Below, in pieces: positions 21,598 through 64,000 of a DNA stretch of 64,000 nucleotides (its first letter is position 1; the number at the start of each line of letters is the position of its first letter). This stretch comes from Malacoraja senta (taxonomy: Eukaryota), in contig JAXLNO010001607.1 in NCBI GenBank assembly GCA_038087875.1, positions 310,001 to 374,000 of the forward strand. Direction: 5' to 3'. The position numbers and the translations under genes were made by a program. Below the pieces are notes generated by a model that was given only the letters and a program-made list of their open reading frames with translations, ran no database searches and had not been told where the DNA came from.

Positions 21598-21642
21598 TTA
21601 AGCTGTGTCTGCGTTGTCCAAGCACACACTCTCAGGGCAGAA

Positions 21643-26501: not shown

Positions 26502-26762
26502 GGCCTCACACACTGATCTATTACTACACCCTGAACCACGGGAGTACTCATCTACCAGAATATAGTGTCGTGGGTGTACTGGACGGTTGTGAGATACAGT
26601 ATTATGACAAAAACATGGTCATTACAGTTCCAAGACAGAAATGGATGGCGGCTGCATTTGACAGGAATTACTGGGTAACAAATACGGTCTCTGAAACTGG
26701 TTTCCATGGAATCATCAAAGGGCAAGTCGATGAATGGATGCGGAGGCAGAACGAAACAGCAA
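26502..26762 (+). CDS. MHC class I alpha1 exon (261 bp)
   Basis: Acceptor tttgtttctag at 26491-26501, donor GTTAGT at 26763. Encodes (G)[86 protein letters not shown], with class I motifs Y7, PE, VG..D, PR..W, YW and NET. Confidence 0.93.
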
Positions 26763-29700
26763 GTTAGTTCATTCATTTCTATACATTTGGAGTGTGATCA
26801 ATGTTCATAAAAAAACACCTCAAAGAAATTTCTCGCTGTGCCAGAGACCCAGGTTTGATCCTGACTACACGTTCTCCCTGTGACCACAGATATTTCCTCC
26901 AGGTGCTCCGGTTTCGTCCCATATCTTGAAAACGTGAGAGTTTGTAGGTTAATTGGGCTCTGTAAATTACTCTTGTGTGCTGAGAATGGGTGAGAAAGTG
27001 GGATTACATACATGTGTAGGAAGGAACTGAAGATGCTGGTTTACAGCAAAGATAGGCACAATGTGCTGGAGTAACTCAGCGGGGCAGGCAGCATCTCTGG
27101 ATCCAAGGAATGGATGACTTTTCAGGTCAAGACCCTTCCTCAGACAGAGTGTTTCCCCTGACTTACTCCAGCATTTTGTGTCCATTTTGGGATAACATAG
27201 AACTAGTGTGAAAGATGATCGATGGTTGGCATGGAATTGGTGGTCAGAATGGCCCATTTCCATGCTGAGTTACTAACCTAAGAACTGCAGATGCTGCAAA
27301 TGTGAAATAAAAACCAAAAATGCCATTGTCTGATGGCTTCATTGTCAGTTTATCACCATGGAAACCTGTCATTACCTTATCAGTGATACCCGCTATGTCC
27401 AACCATGCCTCCCACTCCTGTCTGTAACTTACACATTCTCACAATTCTGAAGCATTAATTTTGTTTCTCTTTCCATAGGTTCTGTTGAACTTGCTGTGCT
27501 TCCAGCATTTTACAAATCATTGAAATGTTGGTGGCTTTTTGAATGGTTAAAATCCCTTGTGTACCTCACCAATTGTTTTTACTTTTATTGACAAATTTTG
27601 AAAGAAAAGTTGTGTGAAATATTTAAAGGATAACCTAAATGTCATTGTGGTTCAGCCGTAGTGATGCTGCCGTAGTGCCAGAGACCCAGGGTTGATCCTG
27701 GCCTCAGGTGCTGTCTGTACAGAGTTTGTACGTACTCCCCGTGACCTGCGTGGGATTTCCCCGGGTGCTCCAGTTTCCTCCCACACTCCAAGCCTGTATG
27801 CCAAAGGGGATCACTGGTCACTGTGGACTCTAAGGGCTGTTTTCGTGCTATATCTCTAAATTATCTTGGGCACCAATTGTAAAGTAAGCTGTCCAAATCC
27901 GTCTGCACCACACTTGTATATCCATATAATTTGCAATTGGACATGTTTTATATTGTAAATCAATAAGTCCTATCACCATTACTGTGTTAATTCAATGACA
28001 TTCGTAGTGTACCATTGAACAAAGCAGGACTAGACGTGGGGGAACCATGGTGAGGTGGGGGACAAAGGAGGACCTGGTGTGGGAGACTTTATAACTTTGT
28101 CGGTGCCTTTTATGTGAAGAATCTTGACATACGTTGGGTTTACAAAACAAAGAATTTTACTGTGACTTGTCACATGTCACTATAAAGTATCATTCATTCA
28201 TGATTAATCATTTCTGAAAACATTGCTTTTTGTTACCTCTTTGGTTACACATTAAACAAATTATATTATTAATCTTTAACTGGACTAAAACAGGGTGAGG
28301 GTACAAACAGGGAACAATACATCAAAATATTATGCACTGGGCATAATTTCTATCAATTTCCACATCTTCCAATATTTATTATTATTTTCAAATTATATGT
28401 GAATACATGTGAATGACGTTTATTAGATTATCATCTGATTCATAGAACCATGTTTATTGAATCAGATTGCCTTCAAAAATAAGTTTTTTAATTTGCATTA
28501 TTTATGGTGCACATATTAACTGCAACATTGTTATGTTTATGAGATTTATGAACATATTGTCGGGGCTCAAGGGTGTGAACAAGAGGGAGAGATTGGGCAA
28601 GCCAGGGCTTTATTCCATGGAGCACAGGAGGCTGAGGGGTGTCATATAGGGGTGCTTAAAATCATGAGGGGAATTGATAGAGTGTATGCCCAGAGCCTTT
28701 TACCCAGAGAAGGGGAATAAAATAACCAGAGGACATGGGTTTAATGTGAGAGGGGGAAGATTTAATTGGAACTTGGGGGCAAACTTTGTGCTCAGAGAGT
28801 GGTCAGCATATGGAATGACCTGCCAGAGAATGGAGTTGCGGCAGGTACAATAACAATATTTAAAAGACACATGGACAGGGACATGCATAGGTAGATAAAA
28901 GTGCTGGAGAAACTCAGCAGGTGAGGCAGCATCTATGGAGCGAAGGAAATGGGCAACGTTTCGGGCCGAAACCCTTCTTCAGACTGATGTGGGGGTGGGG
29001 GTGGGGGGCGCAGGAAGAAGAAAGGAAAAGGTGGAGCCAGTGGGCTGAGGGAGAGCTGAGAAGGGGAGGAGAAAGTAAGGACTACCTGAAATTAGGGAAG
29101 TCAATGTTCATACTGCTGGGGTGTAAACTGCCCAAGCGAAATATGAGGTGCTGCTCCTCCAATTTATGGTGGTCCTCACTCTGGCCATGGAGGAGACCGA
29201 GGGCAGAAAGGTCGGATTTGGAATGGGAGGGGGGAGTTGAAGTGCTGATCCACCGGGAGATCAGGTTGGTTGTTGCGAACCGAGCGGAGGCGTTCGGCGA
29301 AACGATCGCCAAGCCTGCGCTTGGTCTCACCGATGTAGAGCAGCTGACATCTAGAGAGAAACGTTTTGAATGATGTCTACCCATTGCAGGGTAAATGGGA
29401 CTAGCTTAAATGGGGTATCTTGATTAGCATGGACAAGTTGGGCCAAAGGGCTTGTTTCCCTGCTGTGTGACTCTCTATGACTGCTTTATAGCAAAGAGCG
29501 CTGTTGCCTCACAGCTCCAGTGATCCGGGTTCAATCATCTCCAGTGCAGTCTGTGTGGAGTATAAGCATTCTCCCTGTGACAATGTTTGTTCTCCAGTTT
29601 CCTCCCACATACCAAAATGTGCTGAATTAGCAGATTAAGCCACCGCTGCAAATAGGTGGATTTGTGGCATTGATAGAAATGAGAAAGATCCGTTTTGGGG

Positions 29701-32700
29701 AATATTAGTGTTGGAATAATTTTGTTCTCTGGGCTAGAGTGGGCTCAGGAGGCTGAAAGGCCTCTTTCTCTGTCACATGGATTTATGGGCAGTTATTTAT
29801 CCTTGAATTGCCTTCTTTCTCATTTTAGTCAACAGTGTAAAATTGAACTAATTGACTGGATTGAACTATTTAACAATTGTAGATGAAAGGAAGAGCAGAG
29901 GCTGCTTTCCTCCACACACAAAGTGCTAAGGAACTCAACGGGTCAAGCGGCATCTTTGGGGAACATGGGAAGGCAGATATTTCGGGTGAGGATCCTACTT
30001 CAGACTGAAGTTGGGTCACGTTAGAGCATGCTTTGTACTCACACTCGCAGTCCAGTGTTAGTTTTCAAGGATTTTTTGTTATTCACAGCTTGTAGTTGTT
30101 ACATATTCAGCAGAGAGAAGATGAGACAAACTAAAGCACCTGCAAAGCACAACTAAAAGACCACAGAAAGAAGCTTGAAAAGAAGGCTCTTATCTAAACA
30201 ACGTACTTTCAAGAGAGAGTTAGATTTAGCTCTTAAGGCTAAAGGAATCAAGGGATATGGGGGAAAAGATTAGTTAAAGCAAATGTAGGTCCCTTGCCGT
30301 CAGAAACGGGTGAATTGATCATGGGGAACAAGGACATGGCAGACCAATTGAATAACTACTTTGGTTCTGTCTTCACTAAGGAAGACTTAATTAACTGCAG
30401 GAAATAGCAGGGGACTGGGGGTCAAATGAGATGGAGGAACTGAGTGAAATCCAGGTTAGCTGGGAAGTGGTGTTAGGTAAATTGAATGGATTAAAGGCCG
30501 ATAAATCCCCAGGGCCAGATAGACTGCATCCTAGAGTACTTAAGGAAGTAGCCCCAGAAATAGTGGATGCATTAGTGATAATTTTTCAAAACTCTTTAGA
30601 TTCTGGAGTAGTTCCTGAGGATTGGAGGGTAGCAAACGTAACCCCACTTTTCAAAAAGGGAGGGACAGAGAAAACAGGGAATTACAGACCAGTTAGTCTA
30701 ACATCAGTAGTGGGGAAACTGCTAGAGTCAGTTATTAAAGATGGGATAGCAGCACATTTGGAAAATGGTGAAATCATTGGACAAAGTCAGCATGGATTTA
30801 TGAAAGGTAAATCATGTCTGACGAATCTTATAGAATTTTTCGAGGATGTAATTAGTAGAGTGGATAAGGGAGAACCAGTGGATGTGTTATATCTGGACTT
30901 CCAGAAGGCTTTCGACAAGGTCCCACATAAGAGATTAATATACAAACTTAAAGCACATGGTATTGGGGGTTCACTATTGATGTGGATAGAGAACTGGCTG
31001 GCAGACAGGAAGCAAAGAGTAGGAGTAAACGGGTCCTTTTCAGAATGGCAGGCAGTGACTAGTGGGGTACCGCAAGGCTCAGTGCTGGGACCCCAGCTAT
31101 TTACAATATATATTAATGATTTGGACGAGGGAATTGAATGCAACATCTCCAAGTTTGCGGATGACACGAAGCTGGGGGGGCAGTGTTAGCTGTGAGGAGG
31201 GTGCTAGGAGGCTGCAAGGTGACTTGGATAGGCTGGGTGAGTGGGCAAATGCATGGCAGATGCAGTATAATGTGGATCAATGTGTGGTTATCCACTTTGG
31301 TGGCAAAAACAGGAAAGTAGACTATTACCTGAATGGTGGCCGATTAGGAAAAGGGGAGATGCAACGAGACCTGGGTGCCATGGTACACCAGTCATTGAAA
31401 GTAGGCACGCAGGTGCAACAGGCAGTGAAGAAAGTGAATGGTATGTTAGCATTCATAGCAAAAGGATTTGAGTATAGGAGCAGGGAGGTTCTACTGCAGT
31501 TGTACAGGGTCTTGGTGAGACCACACCTGGAGTATTGTGTACAGTTTTGGTCTCCTAATCTGAGGAAGGACATTCTTGCCATAGAGGGAGTACAGAGAAG
31601 GTTCACCAGACTGATTCCTGGGATGTCAGGACTTTCATATGAAGAAAGGCTGGATAGACTCTGCTTGTACTCGCTAGAATTTAGAAGATTGAGGGGGGAT
31701 CTTATAGAAACGTACAAAATTCTTAAGGGGTTGGACAGGCTAGATGCAGAAAGATTGTTCCCAATGTTGGGGAAGTCCAGAACAAGGGGTCACAGTTTAA
31801 GGATAAAGGGGAAATCTTTTAGGACTGAGATGAGAAAAACATTTTTTACACAGAGAGTGGTGAATCTCTGGAATTCTCTGCCACAGAATGTTGTTGAGGC
31901 CCGTTCATTGGCTATATTTAAGAGGGAGTTAGATGTGGCCCTTGTGGCTGAAGGGATCAGGGGGTATGGAGAGAAGGCAGGTACAGGATACTGAGTTGGA
32001 TGATCAGCCATGATCATATTGAATGGCGGTGCAGGCTCGAAGGGCCGAATGGCTTGCTCCTGCACCTATTTTCTGTGTTTCTATGTTTCTAAAAGCAGGA
32101 ATGGGGTACTGATTCTAGATGCCGGCATGATCATATTGAATGGCGGTGCTCGCTCGAATGGCCGAATGGCCTACTCCTGTGCCTATGTTTCTATGTTTCT
32201 ATAATTCAGATTCAGATTCAGATTCAGAAAACTTTATTGTCTGTCGTAACAGAAAATCTTCTTTGGCGTGGCTCAACATGCAAACAGGACAATGTACTGA
32301 TAAGCAGTCATACAACACAGATTTCTGCGAGCACACACCGTGTGTATAGGTCTTAAAAGCAAGTATAAAGATTAAAAACTGTAAAAATAGACAAGATGAA
32401 AGTTGTGGATACGTGTAAATTGACAGTGCGTCAGGGTTAATTTGTCCATTGTTCATTTTTTATTTAAGCTGTTTATGGCAATGGGTATGAATGAGTTTTT
32501 GTGGATGTTTTTCTTAGATAGGGGGACTTTATATCGGCAGCCTGATGGCAGAAGTTGGAAGGACTTGTGCAGGGGGTGGGTGGGATCCTGTGTAATGAGG
32601 TTGGCTTTCCTTTTAACTGCCTGGGTGTGGAGTACTGATAATTGATTTTGAGTTTTGCCAGTTATTTTGCTTGCTTGATTGATGATCCGGGAAAGCTTTG

Positions 32701-35700: not shown

Positions 35701-38700
35701 GCGAGGGTCGGCAGAGTCGCTGGTGGGGAGCTGGAGTGGAGATATGGGCAGCAGCATCGGTGGCTTTCTGAAGACAGTGAAGGTCGGCGACAGTGGTTGC
35801 GGTGGCCCTGACCGGGGAGGTGGTGAGAGTCGACAGCTGCGGCTGTTTCAGTGGTCCGGACCTGGGTTTGGATCAGTATGTGGATGGGTGGGTGTGAGTG
35901 AGGGTGTGTGTGTGTGTGTGGATGTGTGTGGGTGTATGTGAGTAGGTGAGTGTGTGTCTGAGTGTATGTGTGTGTTCGTGGGAGGGTGAATTTTATAAAT
36001 GAAGTTAAAACCATTAGATCTGTTGAACTTGTTAACAGACTATTGACTTGGTAACCTGTTTCCAAATGTTTGTGTTGGCTTCAGAATACCATTAACAATT
36101 CCAGCAACAGTAGCTTCTGCAGAGGTCATTTAGCAAACTCAAGCTGATTAAGAATTACTTAAGGTCGACAATGTCTCATGAACGTCTTGTGGATTTGGCC
36201 AGGCTAAGTATTCAAAGTCAGTTTTATTCATCACATACACCCGAAGGTGCAGTGCAGTGAATTTGCCAGCAGTGATACACGTAAAAAGAACACACAATAC
36301 ACAATAAAATTGAACACAAACATCCACTACAGCATTTTTCACTGTGGTGGAAGGCAACAAGTTTCAGCAAGTCTTCCTCCTTTGTTCACCCGTGTTCGGG
36401 GCCATAACCCCTCCGTAGTCGCAACTAGGGACGGCCCGATGTACAAGGCCCTCTCGTTGGGATGATCCAAACTCCGATGTTGGGACGGACAAACGCACTC
36501 TGTGCGGCTTGGAGGTTCCGACTCGGCACTTTCCTACTGGAGACCGCAGCTGCAGGATGTTATAGGCCGCAGGCCAGCAGTTCTGCGGTTAAATATAAAA
36601 GGATGTTTCAATGTGTATTCTTTCTCCTTATCTGTATTGTAGCATAAACAAAGATGTTCAAAACAAAGCTAGATAAAATGCTGGAGAAACTCAACGGGTG
36701 AGGCAGCATCTATAGAGTGAAGGAAAACAAATGTGCTTTCTGATCCTTTTATTTTATTTATACTTATTTATATTTATCATGGCGGGAGTATAGGGGCATA
36801 AGGCCTCAAATGCAGAAAATGAACAGAGCGCCCCATTCCACCCCTCTCTCAACTTCCATACCCCTTTTTGCCGTGCAGGCTACAGCTCATGGCATAAAAC
36901 TGTAGCATAGTGGATAAAAACAGGATGACTATTGGAGAAGGGAAGGGGGCCCAATAGATACTTTGTACCCACTGATAAAATTCCTCTGAGGCCCTGCGTA
37001 TACACGCACAAACAGTGTGTGTTGTGAACCATGTCTTCCAAGATGCGCATGTATCGTGAGGCATTTCCCAAGTTGGGCTTCACAAGCATTGTTCAAAATC
37101 CGTGGTCAAGCTGCAATGTGTTCTCTGTGCCGAGGTGTTGAGTCACGAGAGCATGAAGCCCAGCAAATTGAAGATCCATTTGGAGTCTTGTCACAGCAAC
37201 CTGGCGGGGAAGAGCGTGGACTGTTCAAACGAAAAGAAGCCGTACTCAAGGGTTCTCGCATCTATTCAACGGGTCACTGCGCTCATCAAAATGAAGCAGC
37301 GTTGGAGGCTTCATACCGGATTGCTTATCGAATCACACAGACTAAGAAACCTCACAGCATCGGTGAAGAGCTTATCAAGCCATGCCTTCTCGAAGCAGCA
37401 AAGTTGGTGCTGGGGGAAGAGCAGTCAAACAAGTTCAGGCAGATTTCCCTTTTGAATGACACAGTCAAAAGTTGAATCTCGGAAATGAGTAATGATATTC
37501 TGCTGCAAGTAGTGAGGGCTGTGACGAGCAGTCCAGTGTATTCACTGCAACTGGGCGAGTCAACAGATGTTGCCTCATGTTCCCAACTGCTAGTCTACGT
37601 TTGTTACCTCAATGGAGTAGCCATGACGGAGGAGTACCTGTTCTCGGAGCCATTGGCTACTACCACTCGGGGAGAAGATGTGTTCAGAATGCTGGAAGCC
37701 TTCCTCATCAAACATGAGCTTGGCTGGGAACGCCTTGTCGGGATGTGTACAGTTGGGGCACCTTCCATGGTCGGTTGCAGATCCAGTTTCCAAGCCTTCG
37801 TGAAGGATGTCGCTCCCCATGTCTCCTTCACCCACTGCATGATACATCGCCATGCTTTAGCAATGAAGACTCTCCCTCTTGGTCTTCGAGAAGTGCTTTC
37901 AGATGTGGTGAAGATTGTGAACCACATCCGAGAGAGTGCAACAAACTCAAGAATCTTCAAGCGATGTGTGAAGAAATGGGCACCGATTTCACTATTCTGT
38001 TATTCCACACAGAAGTGCGCTGGCTTTTGCGTGGTAAAGTTCTCAATCATGTGATTCAACGTTGAGAGGAAATAGCGCTGTTCTTGGAGAGAAGGGGTAC
38101 TGAGAAGGAGAATCAGCTTCATGAAAAGATGCAGGTTGAACTGTTCGTGATGAAGGTTGCTTACTTGGCTGACTTCTTCGCCGAGGTGAATTCCTTGAAC
38201 CTGTCACTTCAAGGAAACCTCCCAATGGCAATGTGGCAGCATTCAGGAGGAACCTTTACCAGAGAAGAGTCCAGGACGGTGACTCGACTATCTTCCCTGA
38301 AATGACAACTCTCCTGGATGCTATGCCTGATGCTGAATGCCACTTCCACGAGGAGATCTCAACCCACCTTCTGGCAATTAGTGAAGCCATCGAACGTTAT
38401 TTCCCCAGACTGGACGACTGCTCTCATGATGAGTGGATCATCCGACCCTTTTCCGTTGAAGACGGTGGCATCAGTGATACTGACGTGACTGCGAAGGTTG
38501 AATTTTACCGAATTCGTGGAGATGCGCAACTCAAGAGTGACTTCATGGAACAAGGGCTCGCCACGTTTTGGCTGGAAGTGAAGGACTGTCCTGTTCTTTC
38601 GAAGAGGGCCTTGACCCTATTGGTCCAGTCCCCCTCAACCTCTCACTGTGAGGGTGGATTCTCAACTATGGTAACTCTGAAAACGAAGGTACGCAATAGG

Positions 38701-41700
38701 CTTGTGATCGACACTGACATGAGATGCTGCCTGTCGAGCATTCGTCCATGTTTTGATTGCCTGATGACTGCGAAGCAATTTCAGCCATCCCATTGACTGA
38801 GCATTGGCTGACATGTTTTAATAAATCGGGCTGTTTTTTTTCAAATTTTGTTTCAGAGGTCACGGTACTGATCAAGAATGCCCGATGGGGTCGTGGGGCC
38901 AAAAAGGTTAAGAACCACTGCTCTAAAGCTTAAAACTAAAGGGGCTAATAAAGGCTACAAAGTGGCTTTAGTGAGTCGGATTACAGAAAATCCCACATCT
39001 TTTTCAAGGTTTCATGGTTAGTTTATTGTCACATATACCAATTAAGGTACATTGAAATGCAGACTACCATACACAATACAAAAAAAAAGCAACAAGACAC
39101 ACAATAACGTAAAAGTTAACATAAACATCCACAACAGATGAGCCCGCACGTTCCTCACTGTGATAGAAGGCAATAAAGTCTAATCTCCTTCCTCTTTATC
39201 TCCCACGGTCTGGGCAGTCAAACAATCTGCAGTCGGTGGTCGAAACCTGGAATCGAAACTCCCACATCGGAGCAGTCGAAACTCCTGCGGCTTGGAGGTC
39301 CCGGATGTTGGTCTCGACCGAGGACCGCAGGCTCCGCGATGTTAAAGTCTTGCAGGCTCTCACAGTTGGAGCCCTAAAGTCGATCCCCGACAGGGATTGC
39401 GAGCTCCATGATGGTAAGTACACAGGCTCCTGCGATGGAGCTCCCGGTCGATCTCTAGCAAAGGCCGCCATTCCTCAATGTTAGGCCGCATTGTGGACGG
39501 AGATATGATACAGAAAATATCACATCAACGTCGAGGGTAAGAGATTAGGAAAAGTTTCCCACAACTCCCCCAACCCCCCCCCCCCCCAAAACAAGCTAAA
39601 GAACACTAGAGAATATACATTTAACACGTACAAAACGGACACAAAGAAGGAAGGGACAGACATACTGTTGGCGAGGCAACCATTGCAGCAAAAGGTGGAT
39701 TGCTTAAGGATATAGAAGGAAATATGTGCCTGGAGTTTGTGGATATAGGCGAGGTTTGGTTTCACCAAGGAAGATATGTAGAATAGTAAGGACCATTAAT
39801 AGTAAGTACATCATAAAATCCTCCAACATTTTTGCCACCTCCAACGGGATCCCACTACTGGTCACATCTTCCCATCTCCACCCCTTTCTGCTTTCCGCAG
39901 AGACCGTTCCCTCCGAAACTTCCTGGTCAACTCGTCCCTTCACACCCAAACCACCCGCTCCCCGGATACTTTCCCCTGCAACCGCAGGAGATGCAACACC
40001 TGTCCCTTTACGTCCCCCCTCGACTCCGTCCAAGGACTTAAAGTCTTTCCAGGTGAGGCAGAAGTTCACTTGCACCTCTTCCAACCTCATCTACTGTATC
40101 CGCTGTTTCAGTTGTCAACTTCTGTACATCAGTGAGACCAAGCGCAGGCTCGGCGATCATTTTGCTGAACACTCCCCCTCAGTCCGTCTTACCCTACCCG
40201 ATCTCCCGGTAGCTCAGCACTTCGACTCCCCCTCCCATTCCCAGTCTGACCTTTCTGTCCTGGGCCTCCTCCATTGTCAGAGTGAGGCCCAGCCCAAATT
40301 GGAGGAACAGCACCTCATATTTCGCTTGGGTAGTTCATACTCCAGCGGTATGAACATTGACTTCTATTACTTTCGATAGCCCTTGATTTCTCTCTCCATC
40401 CCCTCCCCCTTCCCAATTCTGCCACCAGTCTTACTGTCTCCGCCGACATTCTATCTTTGTCCCTCCCCTGACATCAGTCTGAAGACGGGTCTCGACCCAA
40501 AACAATGCCCATTCCTTCTCTCCAGGGAAGCTGCCTGACCCGCTGAGTTACGCCAGCATTTTGTGTCTCTCTTCGATTTTAACATCTGCAGCATCTGCAG
40601 TTCTTTCTTACACATGGAGAATCAATGTGGAGAATGCTAACATGCAGGGACACTTTGAAGTTAAGCAAGAAGGAGATGTTGGATCATTTGAAGAGAAATG
40701 TGGATAAATCCCCAGGACAGAGGGGTGTAGTGGATGATAATAATAATCGTTGAAAACATTAATGCCGTGCTGGTTTCCGACGGGCATGGTGACGGACGCA
40801 CCACACATCTCTGTCCTCCATGCAACTGGCAGGCGTGTCTTTTATCTCTACACATGCGTCTTCCATCAACGTCTTCAGCATCATCTTGATTGGCCGTCCT
40901 GGGTCAAGTCTTCCATGGGTGGGTTCCCACAGCACAACCTTGTTTGCTGGCATTTCTGGGTGGCGGAGCCAGTGACCTGCGAGCCTCATCCTTCGCAACG
41001 TGATCTTCTCGGTCAGAGGTGGATTCTCCCCATAGAGCTTGGCGTTGGTGATGTGGTCCCTCCATCTGACATTTTGAACTTTTCCGAGAATTCGGGTGTA
41101 GGTACCATCGAGAGACTAGGACAGTGCTGGAGTGAGAGTCCAGGCATCACACCCGTACAATAATATGGTCTCTACAGTTGTACGGAAGGCCAAATATTCA
41201 GGCTGTAGTTCAGTGACACATAGAGTTCTGCAGGGATCTGTGCTGTGACCCTTGCTACTTGTGACATATATAAATGACTTGGACCCTGGTGTTCAGAAAT
41301 TACCCAGTCATAACAATTAATCAAATAATGATTTTTATTTTTCTTTCAGATTATCACTACGTTCAAGGACAGTTTGGTTGTGAGGTGGGCGATCACAGTC
41401 CCACTGTAGGGATATTGAAGTTGGCCTTTGATGGAAGATATGCATTTAGTTTTGATAAGGACAAACTAAAGTGGACGGTGCATGATCCAATAACTGAGCC
41501 CTTCAAAGAGAAATGGGACAAGAATGAAAAAAATGAACCGTTATTTCAAGAGCTTGTTAGAACATGACTGTGTGGATCTATGGCTTACATACTATGCAAT
41601 TGGAAAGACATACCTGACCAGAAAAGGTGAGTTCAGAACAAAGGATGTTGTTTTGTGATGATAGGCAATGAGTAATATTTCACTCTGAGGCAATGAGTAA

Positions 41701-44700
41701 TATTATCTCTGACCCAATCATGACAGAGGGAAAGGTCATTCGGCCCATTGATTCTATGCTAGTTTTCTATGCAATGTCGACAAACTGTTCCACAGCTCTC
41801 TCTCACAACTTGCACTCAGCTCCCTCGGATTCTCCTTGCATTCAGCTCCACGACGGATAATTTGCAATGTCCAACTAACTCACCGGCACGTCTTTGGTGT
41901 ATGGGACAAAACTGGAGCACATGGAGGAAGCCAACTGAGTCATAAGGTGATAAGTAATGTCTGCAGCATTAGAACATTCGGCCCATCAAGTTGACTTCGC
42001 CCGTCAATCATGGCTGATCTATCTCTCCCTCCTAACCCCATTCTCCTGCCTTCTCCCCATAACCCCTGCCGTGCATACTAATCAAGAATTAAAAATATCC
42101 ATTGACGGACTCCACAGCCTTCTGTGGCAAATATAATAACCATATAATAACCATATAACCATATAACCATAACAGCACGGAAACAGGCCATCTCGGCCCT
42201 TCAAGTCCGTGCCGAACATTTTTTTTTATTTTTTTAATTAAAAATAAATACTTCCCCCTAGTCCCATCTACCTGCACTCAGACCATAACCCTCCATTCCT
42301 TTCCCGTCCATATACCCATCCAATCTATTTTTAAAGGATAACATCGAACCTGCCTCCACCACTTCCACTGGAAGCTCATTCCACACAGCTACCACTCTCT
42401 GAGTAAAGAAGTTCCCCCTAATGTTCCCCCTAAACTTCTGTCCCTTAATTCTCAAGTCATGTCCCCTTGTTTGAATCTTCACTACTCTCAATGGGAAAAG
42501 CTTATCCACGTCCACTCTGTCTAACCCGCTCATAATTTTAAAGACCTCTATCAAGTCCCCTCTTAACCTTCTGCGCTCCAAAGAATAAAGACCTAACTTG
42601 TTCAACCTTTCTCTGTAACTTAGTTGCTGAAACCCAGGCAACATTCTAGTAAATCTCCTCTGTACTCTCTCTATTTTGTTGACATCCTTCCTATAATTAG
42701 GGGACCAAAATTGTACTCGATACTCCAGAATTGGCCTCACCAATGCCTTGTACAATTTTAACATTACATCCCAACTTCTATATTCAATGCTCTGATTTAT
42801 AAAGGCCAGCACACCAAAAGCTTTCTTTACCACCCTATCTACATGAGATTCCACCTTCAGGGAACTATGCACAGTTATTCCTAGATCCCTCTGTTCAACT
42901 GCATTCCTCAATTCGCTACCATTTACCGTGTACATCCTATTTTGATTTTTTCCTGCCGAGATGTAGCACCTCACATTTGTCAGCGTTAAACTCCATCTGC
43001 CATCTTTCAGCCCACTCTTCCAAATGGCCTAAATCTCTCTGTAGACTTTGAAAATCTACTTCATTATCCACAACGCCACCTATCTTAGTATCATCTGCAT
43101 ACTTACTATTCCAATTTTCCACACCATCATCCAGATCATTGATGTACATGACAAACAACAGTGGACCCAACACAGACCCCTGAGGCACCCCACCAGTCAC
43201 CGGCCTCCAACCTGACAAACAGCCATCCACCATTACTCTCTGGCATCTCCCATTCAGCCACTGTTGAATCCATCTTGCTACTCCACCATTAATACCCAAC
43301 AATTGAATCTTCTTAACCAACCTTCAATGAGGAACCTTGTCAAATGCCTTACTGAAGTCCATATAGACAACATCCACTGCTTTACCCTCATCAATTTCCC
43401 TAGTAACCTCTTCAAAAAATTCAAGAAGATTAGTCAAGCATGACCTTCCAGGCACAAATCCATGTTGACTGTTCCTAGTCAGACCCTGCCTATCCAGATG
43501 CTTATATATATTATCTTTAAGTATCCTTTCCATTAATTTGCCCACCACTGACGTCAAACTAACAGGTCTATAATTGCTAGGTTTACTCTTCGAACCCTTT
43601 TTAAACAACGGAACAACATGCGCAGTACGCCAATCCTCCGGCACTATTCCCGTTTCTAATGACATTTGGAATATTTCTGTCATAGCCCCTGCTATTTCTA
43701 CACTAACTTCCCTCAATGTCCTAGGGAATATCCTGTCAGGACCTGGAGACTTATCCGTTTTCAGATTTTTCAAAAGTGTCCGCACCTCCTCTTCTTTGAA
43801 TCTCACAGTTTCCATTGCTACTCTGCTTGTTTCCCTTACCTCACATAATTCCATATCCTTCTCCTTCGTGAATACCGAAGAAAATAAATTGTTCAATATC
43901 TCCCCCATCTCTTTTGGCTCTGCAGATAGCTGTCCACTCTGACTCTCTAATGGACCAATTTTATTCCTTGTTATCCTTTTCCTATTAATATAGCTGTAGA
44001 AACCCTTTGGATTTACTTTCACCTTACTTGCCAAAGCAACCTCATATCTTCTTTTAGCTTTTCTAATTTCTTTCTTAATATTCTTTTTACATTCTTTATA
44101 CTCCTCAAGCACCTCATTTACTCCATGCTGCCTATAATTATTGTAAATCTCTCTCTTTTTCCGAACCAAGTGTCCAACTATCTTGCACACATTTTACAAA
44201 CTCCAAACCATCCAGCCCTTTTACAGAATGTGTTTCCCAGTCTATGTGTGGAAAATTGAAATCTCCCACAATCACTACCTTGTGCTTACTACTAATATCT
44301 GCTATCTCCTTACATATTTGCTCTTCCAATTCTCGCTCCCCATTTGGCGGTCTATAATACACCCCTATAAGTGTTGCTACACCTTTCCCATTTCTCAGTT
44401 CCACCCAAATAGCCTCCCTAGACGAGCCCTCTAATCTATCCTGCCAAAGCACTGCTGTAATATTTTCCTTGACAAGCAATGCAACACCCCCACCTCTTGC
44501 TCCTCCAATTCTATCACCCCTGAAGCAACAAAATCCTGGAATATTTATTTGCCAATCACAGCCCTCCTGCAACCATGTTTCACTGATCGCCACAACATCA
44601 TACTTCCAGGTGTCAATCCAGGCTCTAAGCTCATCCACCTTTCTTACAATGCTCCTAGCATTAAAATATACACATTTAAGAAACCCACCACCACTTATTC

Positions 44701-47700
44701 TCTGTTTATTATCTTTTTCTTCTTTCTCCCCTACATTTTGGGTCCGAGTGCTTCCCTTCTTTGCCTCCTGCCTCCCACATTTTCCACTAGCTTTCTCTAT
44801 TTGAGTCCCTCCCCCCAACCGTTCTAATTTAAAGTCTCCCCAGTAGCCCTTGCAAATCTCCCCGTCAGGATATTGGTCCCCCTCGGGTTCAAGTGCAACT
44901 ATTGAGACTATGACCTCTCGTCGTAGACTCTCCCATTGGAGACATCCTCTCCACATCCACATCTATCCAAGCCTTTCACTATTTGTTTGTTTTAAAAAAT
45001 ATATTTTTATTAGAAGCATGTGCATATCATAATACAAACATTTCTTATATATCAATCCTACGTTGCTAATAGGTGGGAGTCCAGGTATCAAAATAATAGT
45101 GGTCCTCATTTATCAATTGTATATTAAATCTGCTTCTATTTAGTTTTTAGTTTTTTGATAGATAGAAAGTGAGAAATTAAAAAAAAGGCATGATAAAGAA
45201 GAATGGAATAATTTACCAATAATACAACTTTGGAGATAGGTCCGTAAGTTATAAAGCATAACTATTCATCTAATCCTGAGCTTGGATTTCAGTCAGATTC
45301 CCATGCTGAACCAATTTACCCTTTCAAAAAATCAATACATGGAGACCATATTCTATTAAATAATTCATGTTTGTCAATTAAGACAAGTCTAGTTCTTTCC
45401 AAATGTAAGGTCTCTGATATTTCCATAATCCACATTTTAATTGTGGGGTTTATAGGACCTTTCCAAAATGTTAATATTAATTTTTTCCCAATTATTATAC
45501 TATAATCAAGAAAGTTTCTTTGGTTTATTGTAAGTCTTAAGCTTTGTTCTGATATTCCTAATATTATTAGTTTTGAGTCGGGATCCAGAAGGGGAGGGGC
45601 CATCTTGGGGAACGGCTGCTAGGTCAGCAGACGTCCGTTTAATTCACTTTTTTTTGTAGTTCTAGTGAGTCCTGTGTTCTGTTTGTGGGAGAAATAGACT
45701 TTTTAATGTAGGGGGAAGGGGTTAACTATATTTCTAGGTCCCTACCTGGTCGGTGAGGCAGCTTTTTCTCCGGGCTGCCCCGACGACCCGTCCTCGTGGC
45801 CTACCAGCGGGCGTGGAGCGCCTTTTTCCTGGCGGGGACCGCCCAGCACCTCGGCTTCGGTGGCGGTATAGCGCTGGAGCGGGCGATGCCTTGCCTGGGT
45901 CGCCGTGCTGGATCGACGTGCTGGAGCTCCGGTGAGCTGTGATTGCCGAGGTCAACACCTCTGGGCTGCAGGTCTGCGGAGCGGAGCGGGCGGCGCCGAC
46001 TCCAACATCGGGAGTCTGGGAGCTCCAAACCGGCGCGGCCTTGTCGGCTTCGGAGGCCGCGGACTTCGGTAGGGAAGCGGCTGTTCAGGTGGCCCAGCCG
46101 CTGAGAGGACTCTCCCGACGCTGGGGCAACAGCACCCGGCGAGAACGGCCAGGAACATCGGGCCTCCGTAGAGGCAATAGCTGAGGCCTCAATAGGCCTG
46201 ACTTTTGGGAGAACTGGGGTTGGGGACTGGACATTGTGCCTTCCCCCACAGTGGTAACCATCCAGTGGGGGGATGATTTCTGTGTGTTAGTGATTATTTT
46301 AGTGTGTGTCCAAGATGGCTGCTGGAAGGGAGAGTGTACGCTGGCGCGGTTTAGCTGCCGCTGCTCTCTCGTCACATTTGTGTTTCTGATTTTTTTGTTT
46401 TTGGATCGAATTCTGTCTTTAATTTGTCTATTGGTGATGTCTTTACTATTTATTTTACTCCGATTATACGTTTTTTTACTTGTTAAATACTGTAAGGTGT
46501 CCTTGAGACTCTTGAAAGGCGCCCATAAATAAAATTTATTATTGTTATTATTATTATTATTGACTACTTCAGAAATTATTCTGAAAATGGCCTTCCTGAA
46601 ATTTTTGATTTTTATACAATTTACAAAGGTATGAGTTAAGTTAACCTCTAAATGCTGGCATTTATCGCAAATAGGAGAGATATGTGGGAAGATTCTATTT
46701 AATTTTGTTTAATAATAATGTAATTTATGTAATACTTTAAATTGTATTAAGGCATGTCTGGCATTTAACGAGCATTGATGTATATATTGTAGACTTTCGT
46801 CCCAAATATCTTTCGTTATAGGTTGGCCTAATTCATTTTCCCATGTGTGTCTATATAAATCCGTCGGCGGGACCTCACTATCTAAGAGGGTATTATAAAT
46901 ATGAGATATTACTTTTTCTGTATTAGGATGTTTATTCAAACATTCATCAAGGATTTCTGGTTCCCTAGTTCTGTAATCTTGTGTATTTGATTTAATGTAA
47001 TCTCTAAGTTGTAAATATCTGAAAAAGTTATTTGAGTGTAGTCCGTAAATCTGTTGTAACTCCTGAAATGAAAGAAAAGTGGCTTTCCTATAAAGATGTC
47101 CCATCTTTTTAATTCCATAACTTTTCCATTGTGTAAAGCCTTTATCCAACATGGAAGGTTTGAATAAAGGGTTGTTTATAATGGGGAGACAGAGTGATAA
47201 ATTATCCAATTTTAAAGTCTTTTTTAATTTTTCACTATATGTTTTTTAATGCAATTTTGTGTGAGCAAACATAATCGAACCAATATCAAAAGGCAAACAG
47301 TCTTTCACTATTTTGTATGATTCAATGAGGTCCCCCCTTATTCTTCTAAACTCCAGCAAGTACAGGCCCACTGCCATCAAATGGTCATCATATGTTAACC
47401 CATTCGTTTCTGGGATACCTCCTCTGGACCCTCTCCAGAGCCAGCACATCCTTCCTCAGATATGGTGTCCAAAATTGCTCACAATGCTCCAAATGTGGCT
47501 TGATCGGCGCCTTATAGAACCTCAGCATTACATCCCTGTTTGACAGGGAGAAAGTGTAATTGATGTCTTTCATATTAGTTAACCATGGATTTTCTTGACC
47601 ACAGTTGACAGCCCCTAATGGGATTGCATGTCTATCACACATCTCAAAAGAGCACAGCGTTAAGCTTCGAAGGGCAAAATTTACACGAGATGTGCAGGTC

Positions 47701-50700: not shown

Positions 50701-53700
50701 ATGACCACTCTCTGCAAAAAGAGATTTTGTAAACAAATGACTGATCTCTTTTATCTCTTATTGAAGAGGAGTGAAAATACTGCCAATTTTAAGCTTGTCC
50801 CTCCCCAATTGACCCTCATTTCATAACTTGTCAATTATTTATTATTGTCAATAATGTGCCCTAGTGAAAAGATTTGCCGTTGGTATTAGTTTATTATTGT
50901 CACATGAACTGAGATATAGTCAAAAGTTTGTCTGTGTGTTATCCAATCAGATCATACTACACATGTGCAATCAAGCCATCCACAAGTAGAACAGTGCAAA
51001 GAGAAAACTACTCAGAGTGCAGAATATCGGGTTACAATATCATAGCATTACAGTTACAGAGAAAGTGCAGATCAAAAAGAGTTGCAAGGATCACAATGAG
51101 ATTGGTTGGAAGTTCAGGGCAACATCTTATCTTACATGAGAATCATTCAGTAGTCCAATAACAGCGGGGAAGAAGCTGTTCCTGAATTTAATGGTACGTA
51201 CTTTCAAACTTTCTTGTGTACTGTCTTAACAGGGAGCATACAATCCCTTTTAAACCACATGGTTGGTTGATGGGACGAAAGAGGCAAAATGGGGCAGATG
51301 TGGACAGTAACTTGGTTGTTGTAGTAGACTGAAGAATATTTTGTGGTGGGTGACTGTGCAAGTTTTACTGAAGATGAAAATAACCATCTTACTGTCTTGT
51401 AGTTTCCCCTGAGGTCACTCTCGCTGCCCGCCCTGATGATCATTCAGTCCTGTACTGCACTGTGTTTGGATTTTACCCACCGGCCATCAATGTCAGCTGG
51501 TTGCAGAATGGTCAACATGTCTCTGAGACCAAATCTTCTGGGGTCATACCCAACAACGATGGAACATATCATCTAAGGTCTGTCCTTGAGTATGATCCGT
51601 ATGATGGGAAACAGTATTCCTGTCATGTCGATCACAGCAGCCTGCCCGGTGGGAAGATCATCATCTGGGGTAAGAACGTTAAATATTCTTTCATAGATAA
51701 CCATTATCTTCTGTTGTATCCATTTTAATCATCGGGAATACATCCCATATTCCAAGATGCTTAAACTTTCTTTGTTTAGTGGTGTTGCTCTAAGCAATCA
51801 CATAATCAGCACCCACTCTCCACATGAGCAGAAGACTTTGTCAACAGAACATTGATCAAAAGTAAATAAATAACTAATATACAAGGAAGGAGTATTTGGG
51901 ATTCTCAGTGGTGGAACTGATATCCATGAAAGGTATGTTTAAATAAAAAATGAATCTTGATGTGATTAACAGCAAGGCACTGGGGGAGTACATGCCCCAA
52001 TCCAAATCAATGGTCCGAAGTGGAAATGATTGAGAGCTTCATGTTCCTTGGCATGAATGTATCCAATATTCTGTCATGGACTGGCCACATAGCCAAGGGG
52101 ACACACCAACACCTCTACTTCCTCAGGAGACTGAGAATATTCATCATGTCTCTGGTGACTCCAGCAAACATCTATAGATGCCGCTAGAGAAAGCATGTTG
52201 TTGGGTTGCATCACATCTTGATTTGGGAACTGCACTGCCCAAGACTGCAAGAATATACAAAGAGTTAAAGATCATCACACAGCCCAGACTTCCCACTATT
52301 GGCTCAATCTACACTAGGTTGCCTTGGAAAACGAGACTTATCCCACCCCGGTCATTCCTCCTTCCTGCTCCCATCAGGCAATAGGTACTGAAAGTTGAAA
52401 ATATGCACTGCCAGACTCAGGAACACCCCCTTTCCACCTGTTAACAGGCTTCGGAAGGGTCCTTCCATAATGTAGGTTTAAATCCCGATTCACCTCAACC
52501 TCATTGCACATTGAACATTGTCTATGGAACTGATGTGTTACAATGTTGAGAACTATATTCTGTACTCTGTATCCTCCTCTTTGCTCTATCTATTGTTTTT
52601 GAGTTTGTATTTATGTATAGTATTATAATTTGTTTGGATAGCATACAAAACAAACCTTTGCTCTGTATTTTGAAACATCTGGCATTAATAAAACAAAACC
52701 TAATGAAGTAAGTTCCCTGATGCAAGTTACAGATTCAGCAACAACAAATATAGCTGCCTGACAAACAGCGATCGTACTAGTTTGATTCCAAGTATGCTGC
52801 ACTAACCTACACAAATGTTCACTTTTGAAGATTCCCTCGAACAATGCACAACTAAGGAATCTGATGTTTCACTCTGAAGACTGTTGACATACTCCAGAAC
52901 TTAATTTCCAACCTATCTATGTATCATCAGCAATCTAGGCTACAGCGCCATCAGCCCTTTCTTCTGCTCTTAATACCAACGATAAGTAGTTCACTTTCTT
53001 GCAATGATTCCCAACCTGCAGTTTCAGTTTCCCAACCTGAACACTCCTTTAAGACAACTCTCTGCTTGCTCTAAATTGTTTTTTCCATTCATGCTAATTA
53101 TTACCCCTAATGTCATAAGCCATGTGCCTTTGCATCACTAGATTGATATCTTATGAAAATCCAGATATTGTGGCGACATCTGGTGGTCAGGCCACTTATT
53201 GCTAGAACCCTCGTCAGGGGAGCTGGGACTATCACGTGAGTGACAGGGTTTTGGTGGGAGTTGGTGATGAATCAGTCGCCAGTCAACTGGTGTGCCCGAT
53301 AACAACGGCAGGAACTTTGCTCAAGTCCTTACTAAACGTGAGTGGGCCAAAACTGTATTTCTTTAAAAAAAAACATTGATTTGTTCACGACGCTTGGATC
53401 TCTACAATATATTGTATTTCTTTTGTTTCTCATTTCAATTGTGTTACCTATTCTGCTTTTCCATCATTTTGTTTTTGAATTTTAGGCTTTTCACACCTGC
53501 TGCTCGAATATACATTGTCTACGGGTTCCTGTTGCATTTTCAAAGAATTCTAATCAATTTCTCAAACAAAGTTTGAAGAAGGGTCCCAAAACAAAACGTC
53601 ACCTGTCCATGTGTAAGAAGAAACTGCAAATGCTGGTTTACACCGAAGATGGACACAAATTGCTGGAATAACTCAGCTGGTCAGCCAGCATCTCTGGAGA

Positions 53701-54453
53701 AAAGGAATAGGTGATGAATCCATGTTCGCCAGAGATGCTGCCTGTTCCGCTGAGTTACTCCAGCATTTTGTGTCTATTATGTATATTCTTTTCACTGACT
53801 GGTTAGCATGAAACAAAAGCTTTTCACTGTACCTCAATACATGTGACAATAAACTAATCTAAAGCTTTTGTGTAAATCAGTATCTGCATCTCTTTCTTTC
53901 TACAATTTTCCTGTTAATGCACTTTATTGTTTTGTTATTACTTAAATGTTCTGCCATTACTGAAAGGAATCCAACATTTCCCCCAAAACAGATGTCAGAT
54001 TATATAGGGTTAAAACTTTCTGATTTCAATTCGCCTTCTTTCATGAATTAAGTTGTGGCTGTGATGGTGCCATAGATCATAGAGTTGTACAGAACAGATA
54101 TTGTCCCTTTGCCATGTTGCAGAACTCCGTGATTCAAAACAACATATTTATATATGTTGAAAAGCGCCAAAGATAGACACAAAATGCTGGAGTAACTCAG
54201 CGGTGAGGTAGCATCTCTTGAGAAAAGGAATAGGTTGCATTTCGGGTCGAGACCCTTCTTCACCCTGAAGTCTTCAGACAGTGCCAATCTATTTAGCTGC
54301 ACTGCTTAGCAATTGATTTGTAAAATTATGCATTTTTATTTTTCAGAAGGAAATAGGAAGAAAGACAGGCACATAGGCCTTATTGCCGTGTGTGTGCTGA
54401 TATTGCTGGCTATTGTCTTGGCAGTAATTGTTTGGTGGAGAAAAAGAGGAGAG
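26502..54453 (+). CDS. Multi-exon MHC class I heavy-chain-like gene (non-classical); alpha1, alpha2, alpha3 and TM exons; frameshift in alpha2; leader and cytoplasmic exons unresolved
   Basis: Four exons in the correct order with AG/GT sites and phase-1 junctions between them. Spliced product (A7 read as A6): [10 protein letters not shown]...YW...[18 protein letters not shown]...FDG...KW...LEHDC...RK/VSPEV...YC..FGFYP...W...NDGTY...[10 protein letters not shown]...W/E...TM. C101-C164 and C203-C259 equivalents and the N86 glycan site are conserved. Introns are 14,587, 9,776 and 2,677 bp. Confidence 0.93.
28540..28880 (+). mobile_element. CR1 LINE 3' fragment
   Basis: [18 protein letters not shown]...[10 protein letters not shown] motifs. 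Confidence 0.75.
28885..29355 (-). mobile_element. Penelope-like element 3' end (GIY-YIG C-terminus plus pLTR)
   Basis: [48 protein letters not shown], followed by the pLTR with a hammerhead-like motif. Confidence 0.85.
28951..28987 (-). ncRNA. Minimal hammerhead-ribozyme-like motif in the Penelope pLTR (best-preserved copy)
   Basis: rc = UCAGU CUGAAGA A GGG-UUUCGG-CCC GAAA CGUU GCCC: CUGANGA core, stem II, GAAA and a palindromic stem III leading into a GUH triplet. Confidence 0.65.
30265..32200 (+). mobile_element. CR1 LINE, 5'-truncated, with RT domain and 3' tail
   Basis: KSPGPD...[16 protein letters not shown]...QHGF...[11 protein letters not shown]...[10 protein letters not shown]...FADD. 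A +1 G in a G7 run at 31174-31180 shifts the frame. (atgtttct)n tail, with the 3' end partly duplicated. Confidence 0.95.
32205..32905 (-). mobile_element. Rex1/Babar-like LINE 3' fragment
   Basis: [18 protein letters not shown]...[13 protein letters not shown]...DPTHPLH..FQLLPSG; (tctgaa)n tail. Confidence 0.85.
33401..34080. mobile_element. Composite MITE with GGGCCTGTCCCACTT TIRs, an inner TIR-like pair and a Penelope-derived insert
   Basis: Outer TIRs ggggcctgtcccacttgcgtgtccttgg / ccaaggacacgtaagtgggacaggccc+TTAA; inner pair at 33855-33870 and 33979-33994. Confidence 0.75.
33521..33715. repeat. Palindromic head-to-head pair of Penelope pLTR/hammerhead-like units
   Basis: About 95-bp inverted arms centred on cag-T-ctg at 33616. 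Confidence 0.85.
34432..34637 (+). mobile_element. HE1-like SINE whose tail was the hAT target site (tail resumes at 38921)
   Basis: gagttgctgcc..gcagcaccagagacccgggtttgaaccc head; the tail ctgta.ctc.aaag..taaa is split by the hAT. Confidence 0.75.
35033..35595. repeat. Minisatellite: 9 units of about 58-68 bp with variable G-runs
   Basis: Unit gagtcatcactactgatgg(g/a)tcttccctg(t/c)aggag(G)n..agca..ag.accc..ca; the first unit is a perfect 14-bp hairpin. Confidence 0.92.
36056..36221 (+). pseudogene. Second hAT transposase remnant (Tip100/ZMYM1-type dimerisation domain) nested in the Buster element
   Basis: [53 protein letters not shown] with a 2-bp deletion at about 36124; a CAGGGCC-type hAT end lies at about 34788. 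Confidence 0.8.
37031..38796 (+). pseudogene. Buster-type hAT transposase, multiply frameshifted
   Basis: BED-like [62 protein letters not shown]-terminal CEGGFS...QPSH*; stops and frameshifts throughout. Confidence 0.92.
39790..40610 (+). mobile_element. Penelope-like element 3' part (GIY-YIG endonuclease plus pLTR)
   Basis: [32 protein letters not shown]...VAQHF...[12 protein letters not shown]...GMNIDF; degenerate hammerhead-like motif at about 40474-40505. Confidence 0.9.
40730..41200 (-). mobile_element. RTE-clade LINE 3' fragment
   Basis: [28 protein letters not shown]...GRP...MEDRDVW; (tta)n tail. Confidence 0.8.
41350..41626 (+). CDS. MHC class I alpha2 exon (277 bp, +1 frameshift in A7 run at 41527-41533)
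   Basis: Acceptor ttctttcag at 41341-41349, donor GTGAGT at 41627. The 5' frame reads [12 protein letters not shown]...AFDGR...KW...KEKWDKNEK. The +1 frame continues [31 protein letters not shown]. Length is 276+1. Confidence 0.92.
42132..44900 (-). mobile_element. Young CR1 LINE (endonuclease, RT and 3' end; internal deletion near 44190)
   Basis: EN motifs YFNARS, ISETWL, RGGGVA, YYRPP, VGDFN; RT motifs [32 protein letters not shown]; (ataacc)n tail. Confidence 0.95.
44990..47235 (-). mobile_element. L1-clade LINE 3' fragment, split by an insertion at about 45589-46560
   Basis: [12 protein letters not shown]...[10 protein letters not shown]...WENELG...CSLNARH.LIQFK and [11 protein letters not shown]...W...F...WSP; poly-T at 44990-45010. 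Confidence 0.85.
45589..46560 (+). mobile_element. Unclassified GC-rich non-coding retroposon with an L2-like 3' tail
   Basis: Ends tgtaaggtgtccttgagactcttgaaaggcgcccataaataaaatttat(tat)n; CpG-rich body; no convincing ORF. Confidence 0.6.
47860..48150 (-). mobile_element. HE1-like SINE
   Basis: tttagtttag tail, ggaggaaaccggagcaccc core, ggatcgaacccgggtctct head. A similar copy lies at 49860-50140. Confidence 0.8.
51403..51669 (+). CDS. MHC class I alpha3 (Ig C1-set) exon (267 bp)
   Basis: Acceptor ctgtcttgtag ending 51402, donor GTAAG at 51670. Encodes (V)[88 protein letters not shown], showing C1-set C-FYP-W-N.DGTY-YSC.V.H motifs. Confidence 0.95.
52010..52700 (+). mobile_element. Rex1/Babar-like LINE 3' fragment, decayed
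   Basis: gccaag..gacacaccaacacctctacttcctcaggagactgag pattern shared with 24130-24900. Confidence 0.65.
53165..53345. promoter_or_regulatory. Candidate intronic CTCF site plus E-box
   Basis: 53171-53189 rc = TGACCACCAGATGTCGCCA (CTCF-like); TCACGTGA at 53232-53239; TGAATCA at 53268-53274; non-repeat context. Confidence 0.4.
54347..54453 (+). CDS. Connecting peptide/transmembrane exon of the class I-like gene
   Basis: Acceptor tttttatttttcag ending 54346 (phase 1), donor GTAAGA at 54454. Encodes (E)[35 protein letters not shown]: about 22 hydrophobic residues followed by a basic stop-transfer. Confidence 0.88.
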
Positions 54454-54699
54454 GTAAGATGGAAAAATTGTGATGCACTGTTGCTAGTAAAGGTATTGGG
54501 CTTGAAGAAATTATCGATCTCAAGTAGGATAAGGCAGCAGCTACACCTGAAATGCCTCGACAGTCACCACTGTCAACTAGCCTTTGTGCTGTTGTTAAAT
54601 GTTTCTGATAATCAGATATTTAAAAATTGTGAATTCAGTGTAAAAAAATGTTATACATTATGGATTCACTGCCCCAAATCCTAGAAATATCAATGAGTC

Positions 54700-63830: not shown

Positions 63831-64000
63831 GTCAGTGGAAGTTAAAAGTTAAGGGAGCAAACGAGTTTGCAACCTTACAGCATGCTGCCTTACACAAGGA
63901 GAGTCTAGTTATTGACATGTTATTGATGTTCATGATTATTCTGTTCTTTGTGCCTGGCCATTTTGACTTTGTCACATGTTACTTGGTTTATGATATTGTA

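Follow-up and report, generated by a model that had tools for sequence, protein, structure and literature searches.

A probably recently disabled copy of the non-classical MHC class I gene UGA in the skate Malacoraja senta

The MHC class I gene on contig JAXLNO010001607.1 of Malacoraja senta (assembly GCA_038087875.1) raises two questions, namely to which lineage it belongs and whether this copy is intact. We analysed a stretch of 64,000 nucleotides (positions 310,001 to 374,000, forward strand), hereafter the window. The four class I exons of the original prediction were recovered on the plus strand at the predicted positions by direct reading of the DNA (Table 1). They follow the domain order of MHC class I with one exon per domain, i.e., an MHC_I platform (Pfam MHC_I matches the N-terminal part of alpha2, E=2.5e-7), an Ig C1-set alpha3 (Pfam C1-set, E=3.4e-20) and a transmembrane (TM) segment. 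A tblastn search with 260 class I proteins recovered no further class I exons in the window. Clean splicing with phase-1 junctions had also been predicted; the splice sites, read from the DNA, are indeed intact in all four exons, but alpha2 is frameshifted and phase 0, not phase 1, is reached at the end of the TM exon. The introns do contain transposons, as had been described: Pfam recognized LINE sequence in the alpha1-alpha2 and alpha2-alpha3 introns.

Table 1. Features of the UGA locus in the window (upper case, exon; lower case, intron; slash, splice junction).
Feature	Position	Strand	Details
Junction of two unique blocks	25232..25233	+	blastn and junction alignment; blocks abut with 2-base overlap
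Alpha1 exon	26502-26762	+	261 nt, phase 1 to phase 1; ..ctag/GG..CAA/gttagt
LINE-type reverse transcriptase remnant, alpha1-alpha2 intron	30431..31994	+	RVT_1 E=1.7e-29; reverse transcriptase 30431-31189
Alpha2 exon	41350-41626	+	277 nt (276+1); ..ttcag/AT..AAAAG/gtgagt
A7 homopolymer, +1 frameshift	41527-41533	+	read from DNA; TGA in upstream frame at 41566-41568
LINE element, alpha2-alpha3 intron	42258..44962	-	Exo_endo_phos E=1.8e-14, RVT_1 E=5.7e-12; both domains 43324-44962
Alpha3 (Ig C1-set) exon	51403-51669	+	267 nt, intact; ..tgtag/TT..TGGG/gtaaga
Connecting-peptide and TM exon	54347-54453	+	107 nt; ..ttcag/AA..GAG/gtaaga
A5 run in TM exon	54441-54445	+	A6 in Rhinoraja
Last 86 bases of the window	63915..64000	+	match Rhinoraja locus 39842-39927, 94%

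Peptide-anchor positions are given in HLA-A2 numbering, and alpha2 was read with one A of the A7 run ignored. The predicted residues were all found in the translation: Y7, Y59, R84, K146, W147 and Y171 are kept, whereas F stands at position 143 and L at position 159, so that the set of six of eight anchors departs from that of classical (UAA-type) genes at T143 and Y159. Both cysteine pairs and the NET N-glycosylation sequon are likewise present. The alpha1 exon carries Y7, Y59, R84, the sequon and the lineage motif GFHGIIKGQ, while the second alpha2 cysteine, L159 and Y171 are in frame only if one A is ignored. With two of eight anchors replaced and skate, ray and shark proteins as nearest relatives, the gene is a non-classical class I gene of cartilaginous fish, as had been proposed. 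The CD1-type model Pfam MHC_I_3 reached E=0.052 and 13.6 bits on alpha2, below its cutoff of 35 bits, and membership in that family is thus not indicated.

The best PDB match of every exon is chain 9ch4_A, which in alpha1 and alpha3 leads by 15-28 orders of magnitude; the entry, released on 2026-03-18, bears the title "shark nonclassical MHC class I, UGA". Alpha1 matched this chain with 131.8 bits (E=7.4e-38) and all other chains with at most 41 bits, the nurse shark classical structure 6lup at E=2.1e-9. Alpha3 matched it with 119.6 bits (E=5.7e-34) compared to about 68 bits for the highest-scoring chains that are not fusions; chains fused to beta2m (e.g., 4iiq_C) reach 108.4 bits on alpha3, a score summed over two Ig domains. 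The two halves of alpha2 matched residues 90-143 (63.8 bits, E=7.8e-17) and 147-179 (38.8 bits, E=2.9e-9). The zebra shark (Stegostoma) protein P0155 aligns to 9ch4 over all 268 residues with about 88% identity (E=6.7e-170; identity read from the alignment as printed). For the window protein, identity is 92% to Rhinoraja longicauda P0159, 90% to Leucoraja erinacea P0001 (87% for the alpha1 exon alone), 60% to P0155 and 35-39% to other sampled shark class I proteins. A careful maximum-likelihood (ML) tree, computed without the 9CH4 sequence itself and without named UFA, UDA, UEA and UBA references, recovered a skate trio, a batoid clade of 8 and a monophyletic UGA clade of 19 sequences from sharks and rays that includes P0155, each with 100/100 support, and placed the window gene outside the large clade of shark class I sequences. 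At least 16 species of sharks, rays and skates have annotated orthologs, which bear generic names (e.g., "F10 alpha chain-like"). For P0159, the AlphaFold model is of middling confidence (pLDDT 76) and can be superposed on structures of class I and MR1 with Z scores of 21-24; its full-length rmsd of 6-7 Å stems from the alpha3 hinge, and the model was used only for the PDB title. A literature search for papers on 9CH4 returned unrelated matches only. As judged by sequence, the window gene is a skate member of UGA, a non-classical class I lineage that already has a name and is not new. Strongly supported clustering within a described lineage was what the original prediction itself had named as removing novelty, and its suggestion of a possible new lineage falls with the 100/100 placement of the gene in the clade of a near-identical relative of 9CH4.

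The copy in the window has two errors of frame. An additional A in the A7 run shifts the alpha2 frame into a TGA, and the upstream and downstream halves of this exon consequently lie in different frames. Rhinoraja reads GAAAAGATG at this site and relatives have either A6 (contigs of three runs, one A fewer) or AAAAG; with one A ignored, alpha2 is exactly colinear with 9CH4 from W143 to M149. Short-read contigs of a close relative (organism A), which is about 98% alike, show a different defect in this exon, a deletion of 2 nt. The TM exon has 107 nt compared to 108 nt in the Rhinoraja ortholog, which ends in phase 1, and ends in phase 0 because of an A5 run where Rhinoraja has A6. Removal of one A and addition of the other restore colinearity with 9CH4 and the orthologs. 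The original prediction was silent in its main text on the gene not being intact and mentioned the A7 problem only as "A7 to A6" in its proposed check.

The third defect concerns the leader. Comparison with the ortholog locus of R. longicauda by blastn showed colinear unique blocks of 84-90% identity, two of which abut in the window and are 16.9 kb apart in Rhinoraja (positions 4988 and 21854 of that locus). The Rhinoraja leader exon (10001-10053) lies inside this 16.9-kb stretch, and no part of the window matches the leader region, an absence judged against the locus of this one other species. A fuzzy protein search likewise found no leader exon in positions 1-26502 of the window and no tail exon in 54454-64000. 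The end of the window falls in the intron before the tail exon (41022-41063 of the Rhinoraja locus), and the last coding exon is thus expected beyond the window. In sum, the frameshift with TGA in alpha2, the TM exon one base short and the missing leader exon leave no uninterrupted frame from leader to stop.

The most likely state of this locus, in our view, is that of a skate UGA copy disabled very recently, or of a null haplotype. As assembled, with one A gained, one A lost and the leader together with about 17 kb missing, it cannot make UGA protein, and expression as protein is improbable given the two frame errors and the lack of a leader exon. The loss would be recent because the exons are 94.7% identical to Rhinoraja compared to about 85% for introns, dN/dS is 0.37, and in the ML tree the gene has a short terminal branch (0.025, the shortest of the three skates). 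Some observations run against a disabled copy: the coding sequence is otherwise without decay, both small indels lie in A homopolymers, the commonest type of long-read assembly error, and the missing leader could be due to rearrangement, to collapse of the assembly or to a position more than 26.5 kb further upstream. The rival account is that of a working skate UGA gene in which the A7 and A5 runs are assembly errors and the leader either precedes the window or dropped out through a local assembly collapse. Such a gene would fit the single-base nature of both length changes, the exact colinearity regained by correcting them, the intact splice sites, and the low dN/dS and short branch. It seems rather unlikely to us, however, since it requires each of three independent defects to be an artefact, a 16.9-kb stretch gone from between colinear unique blocks is unlike a homopolymer error, and the real 2-nt deletion of a very close relative, noted above, indicates that null forms of UGA exist in this group.

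The identity of the gene leaves less room for alternatives. A classical-type, peptide-presenting gene would be in line with the six anchors kept, but is very improbable in view of F at 143 and L at 159, the position outside the large shark class I clade, the lipid binding reported for the lineage (PMC12562908), and a single or low copy number with 60% conservation from skate to zebra shark, unlike fast-evolving classical genes. We give next to no credence to a new, undescribed lineage of cartilaginous-fish class I; the low identity to other sampled shark class I proteins and the purely generic names of the publicly annotated orthologs would suit it, but UGA is named in PMC12562908, its orthologs occur in the species counted above, and the fully supported nesting with P0155 already refutes such a lineage unless the title of 9CH4 is wrong.

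For the disabled skate UGA copy, the significance lies mainly in annotation, as the lineage is named, its crystal structure is solved and orthologs are annotated in many elasmobranch genomes. The fitting label is UGA, not "F10 alpha chain-like", and the window copy should be flagged as disrupted. For work on CD1-like presentation in skates, it matters whether Malacoraja senta has any intact UGA copy. It is conceivable, though doubtful, that in this group of skates several null haplotypes of UGA, independent of each other, are segregating. The proposed null forms are the leaderless form with the additional A described here and the form with the 2-nt deletion in close relatives. If true, a CD1-like presenting gene about 400 million years old would be in the process of being lost, or be polymorphic for presence and absence, within a single skate lineage whose sister genera retain it intact.

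Among known systems, the closest is shark UGA (9CH4), which belongs to the same lineage and has the motif MNRYFKxLLExDC and a 15-residue motif in common with the window gene, a skate ortholog about 60% identical to orectolobiform shark proteins. The window copy differs from shark UGA by its two frame errors and the lack of a leader exon. The ortholog of R. longicauda has the same exon layout, introns about 85% alike and a DYQTI tail. Both this protein and Leucoraja P0001 (isoform X5 of the "class I histocompatibility antigen, F10 alpha chain-like" gene) are intact and begin with the leader MxLFxLLSFF(R/H)VQxALAG, whereas the window copy is broken; the Leucoraja ortholog appears spliced from alpha2 to alpha3 in one probable RNA contig. 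A sister lineage (Leucoraja P0006, P0181-P0191) from the same sharks and rays has GFHGI(I/V)KG and MN(K/R)YFKxLLEKDC in common with UGA, but is only 39% identical, forms a separate clade of 12 sequences (100/100) and carries Pfam MHC_I_3 in precomputed annotation. A 2025 review (PMC12562908) names UGA and describes it as CD1-like and lipid-binding, the lipid ligand being a personal communication therein that refers to CD1d-type lipids. By sequence the window gene is not a member of CD1 and keeps six of the eight peptide anchors, and apart from UGA the P0159 model finds its best fold matches in MR1 and classical class I rather than in CD1. Intact UGA orthologs encode leader, alpha1, alpha2, alpha3, TM and a very short tail bearing a Tyr-x-x-Ile/Val sorting motif; this YxxI/V motif is present in 13 of 15 aligned UGA-clade proteins, and the tail resembles the very short YxxI/V tails of CD1b, c and d. 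By analogy with CD1 and from the literature, UGA would associate with beta2-microglobulin, traffic through endosomes and display a non-peptide (lipid) ligand.

Direct reading of the DNA confirmed the four exons of the original prediction at their proposed places, and the non-classical MHC class I gene that it had recognised is real. Pfam placed MHC_I in the first part of the alpha2 exon (E=2.5e-7) and C1-set in alpha3 (E=3.4e-20), and tblastn with ~260 class I proteins found no class I exons in the 64 kb beyond these four. TE-filled introns, also proposed, are a fair description, as remnants of LINE reverse transcriptase and endonuclease are present in them. An LTR-retrotransposon-like ORF pair lies upstream of the gene at 1800–5070, one ORF having an integrase core domain (rve, E=2.6e-10). 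A plus-strand ORF run at 37017–38796 resembles a DNA-transposase remnant with a zinc-finger-like N-terminus; two ORFs from this run had no Pfam match at E<=0.001. A stretch of ~6.4 kb (57523–63914) with a very AT-rich part (GC 0.34 at 58–62 kb) has no counterpart in the intron of Rhinoraja longicauda and is probably a lineage-specific insertion.

Exons of the class I gene in the window and tail exon of its ortholog in Rhinoraja longicauda (locus L001)
Feature	Position	Length	Strand	Basis
alpha1 exon	26502–26762	261 nt	+	DNA read; canonical AG/GT borders
alpha2 exon	41350–41626	277 nt	+	DNA read; canonical AG/GT borders
alpha3 exon	51403–51669	267 nt	+	DNA read; canonical AG/GT borders
Connecting peptide and TM exon	54347–54453	107 nt	+	DNA read; canonical AG/GT borders
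Rhinoraja tail exon	L001 41022–41063			

The best solved relative of every exon, by a wide margin, was chain A of PDB 9CH4 (9ch4_A), with E=7.4e-38 for alpha1 versus 2e-9 for 6lup, a classical nurse shark structure, and E=5.7e-34 for alpha3. The 9CH4 entry, released 2026-03-18, is titled "Crystal structure of shark nonclassical MHC CLASS I, UGA". When the Rhinoraja ortholog was folded from a 16-sequence family alignment and the model searched against the PDB, 9ch4 was the top match (Z 24.3, 58% identity), and the match of a Stegostoma (zebra shark) protein to 9ch4 took in all 268 residues (E=6.7e-170; ~88% identity as read off the printed alignment). The window protein, with an X at the alpha2 frame break, has 92% identity to the Rhinoraja protein, 90% to that of Leucoraja, 73% to Pristis, and 60% to Stegostoma; identity is 39% for a sister lineage and 32–36% for other chondrichthyan class I proteins. 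A careful maximum-likelihood tree (56 rows, LG+C20+F+G4) contained three nested groups, the skate trio within a batoid clade of 8 and this within the UGA clade of 19, each at 100/100. The sister lineage formed a separate clade of 12 rows including P0006, also at 100/100. The long rows P0264, P0045, and P0053 were excluded from this tree; placement was unchanged in a quick tree that included them. Taken by itself, membership of the window gene in UGA is almost certain. As UGA has already been described, the lineage is not new, an option that the original prediction had left open.

UGA orthologs are found across sharks and rays. In an exhaustive HMMER search with alpha1, no more than three cluster representatives scored E<1e-30, from Leucoraja erinacea (87% identity) and Pristiophorus (two proteins, 63–64%). 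A word-based search with one representative as query found orthologs in Heterodontus, Heptranchias, Chiloscyllium, Stegostoma, Cetorhinus, Scyliorhinus, Mustelus, Rhinoraja, Pristis (three copies), Hemitrygon, and Mobula; Rhincodon and Hemiscyllium are members of the same 90% clusters.

The original prediction described exons that splice cleanly, and noted "A7 to A6" only for the checking of its model; the clean splicing does not hold, since alpha2 is out of frame and the TM exon one base short. The alpha2 exon is one base longer than a multiple of three, its frame runs from the acceptor into a TGA stop at 41566–41568, and the conserved end of the domain and the phase-1 donor sit in another frame than the upstream part. 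This frameshift is located in the A7 run at 41527–41533: the two halves match 9ch4_A residues 90–143 and 147–179, so that dropping one A gives back exact colinearity. The TM exon ends ..AGA AAA AGA GGA GAG/gt in phase 0, whereas that of Rhinoraja has 108 nt and a phase-1 end (AGAAAAAAGAGGAAAG/gt) and joins a tail exon starting AT TAT CAA.. (DYQTIQPNQNMRC, then a stop). The window thus has A5 (54441–54445) where the ortholog has A6; with one A added, the window exon would encode WWRKKRR, followed by a phase-1 G. Protein and DNA searches of the window with the Rhinoraja and Leucoraja leaders found no leader exon. Unique colinear blocks pair L001 3092–4988 with window 20193–25233 and L001 21854–22311 with window 25232–25686, and the 16.9 kb between both blocks in Rhinoraja, inside which its leader exon lies (L001 10001–10053), are without counterpart in the window. 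The last 86 bases of the window match L001 39842–39927, ~1.1 kb ahead of the Rhinoraja tail exon, and by this match the tail exon of the window copy is simply beyond the window end.

Logan contigs of four public runs were aligned over the alpha2 region. In organism D (~95% alike), a single contig crosses the whole stretch; it has A6, and its 276-nt exon is intact. Organism A (runs X1 and X2, ~98% alike) also has A6, i.e. one A fewer at 41527, and carries a 2-nt deletion at 41499 (window CCC 41499–41501), so that its alpha2 exon has 274 nt and is out of frame, with a TGA soon after the deletion in our own translation. These contigs are DNA, because they run evenly through exon and intron. In X1, the deletion accounts for 1321/4822 of depth; it may be heterozygous. 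A 167-nt contig of run X24 (organism I, guessed to be RNA) covers 41528–41626 and runs on from there into TTTCACCTGAGGTCACACTCGCTGCCCGCA, with which the alpha3 exon begins (51403), and the alpha2/alpha3 junction is thus spliced as predicted. Its four alpha2 differences give D-Y-W-R, as in the Leucoraja protein P0001, and its alpha3 start reads ..CGCA, as required for the ART of P0001; from sequence, we infer the little skate or a near relative as its source. This probable RNA contig shows a UGA ortholog transcribed and spliced in a relative, not in Malacoraja senta.

Identity to Rhinoraja is 94.7% in exons and ~85% in introns, dN/dS is 0.37 (dS 0.11, dN 0.04, 290 codons), and the terminal branch of the window copy is the shortest among the three skates in the careful tree, all of which count against an old pseudogene. 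The three lesions, i.e. the additional A in alpha2, the short TM exon, and the absent leader, count for a broken copy. Both small indels lie in homopolymers, and assembly errors could therefore account for these two; the absent leader is evidence of a different kind. That the window holds a working gene disrupted only by faults of the assembly we regard as unlikely. A disabled copy or null haplotype of skate UGA is the reading we favour with reasonable confidence, and the gene is probably a UGA copy that died recently.

In intact orthologs the domains follow the class I order, and both disulfides, the N-glycan site, and six of the eight peptide-terminus anchors are present, F143 and L159 being the replaced ones. 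Of the 15 UGA-clade proteins aligned, 13 keep an extra Cys in an alpha1 strand (LDGCEI; window 26588–26590), for which the sequence offers no obvious partner. The tail is very short, with YxxI/V in 13/15 of these proteins (alignment columns ~380–415), as DYQTI, AYENI, DYESI, or DYENI in rays and AYNAV, GYNVI, DYNVV, DYNTV, or EYNAV in sharks.

A 2023 MBE paper lists UBA, UDA, UEA, and unpublished UFA (PMC10751288), and according to a 2025 review, UFA and UGA of sharks and rays are CD1-like class Ib genes, MHC-linked and single- or low-copy, for which lipid ligands of the CD1d type are suggested by a crystal structure and by mass spectrometry (personal communication in PMC12562908). Membership of UGA in the CD1 family by sequence was rejected, with Pfam MHC_I_3 under threshold. 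The sister class Ib lineage (P0006, P0181–P0191; none in the window), which occurs in the same sharks and rays, carries this CD1-type domain in precomputed annotation and has GFHGI(I/V)KG and MNxYFKxLLEKDC in common with the window protein. Outside UGA, the best structural matches of the predicted Rhinoraja model were MR1 and classical class I. The Tyr-x-x-Ile/Val of the UGA tail resembles the motif by which CD1b, c, and d are sorted to endosomes; going by the literature and the analogy to CD1, intact UGA would pair with beta2m, could traffic through endosomes via this tyrosine motif, and may present lipid rather than peptide.
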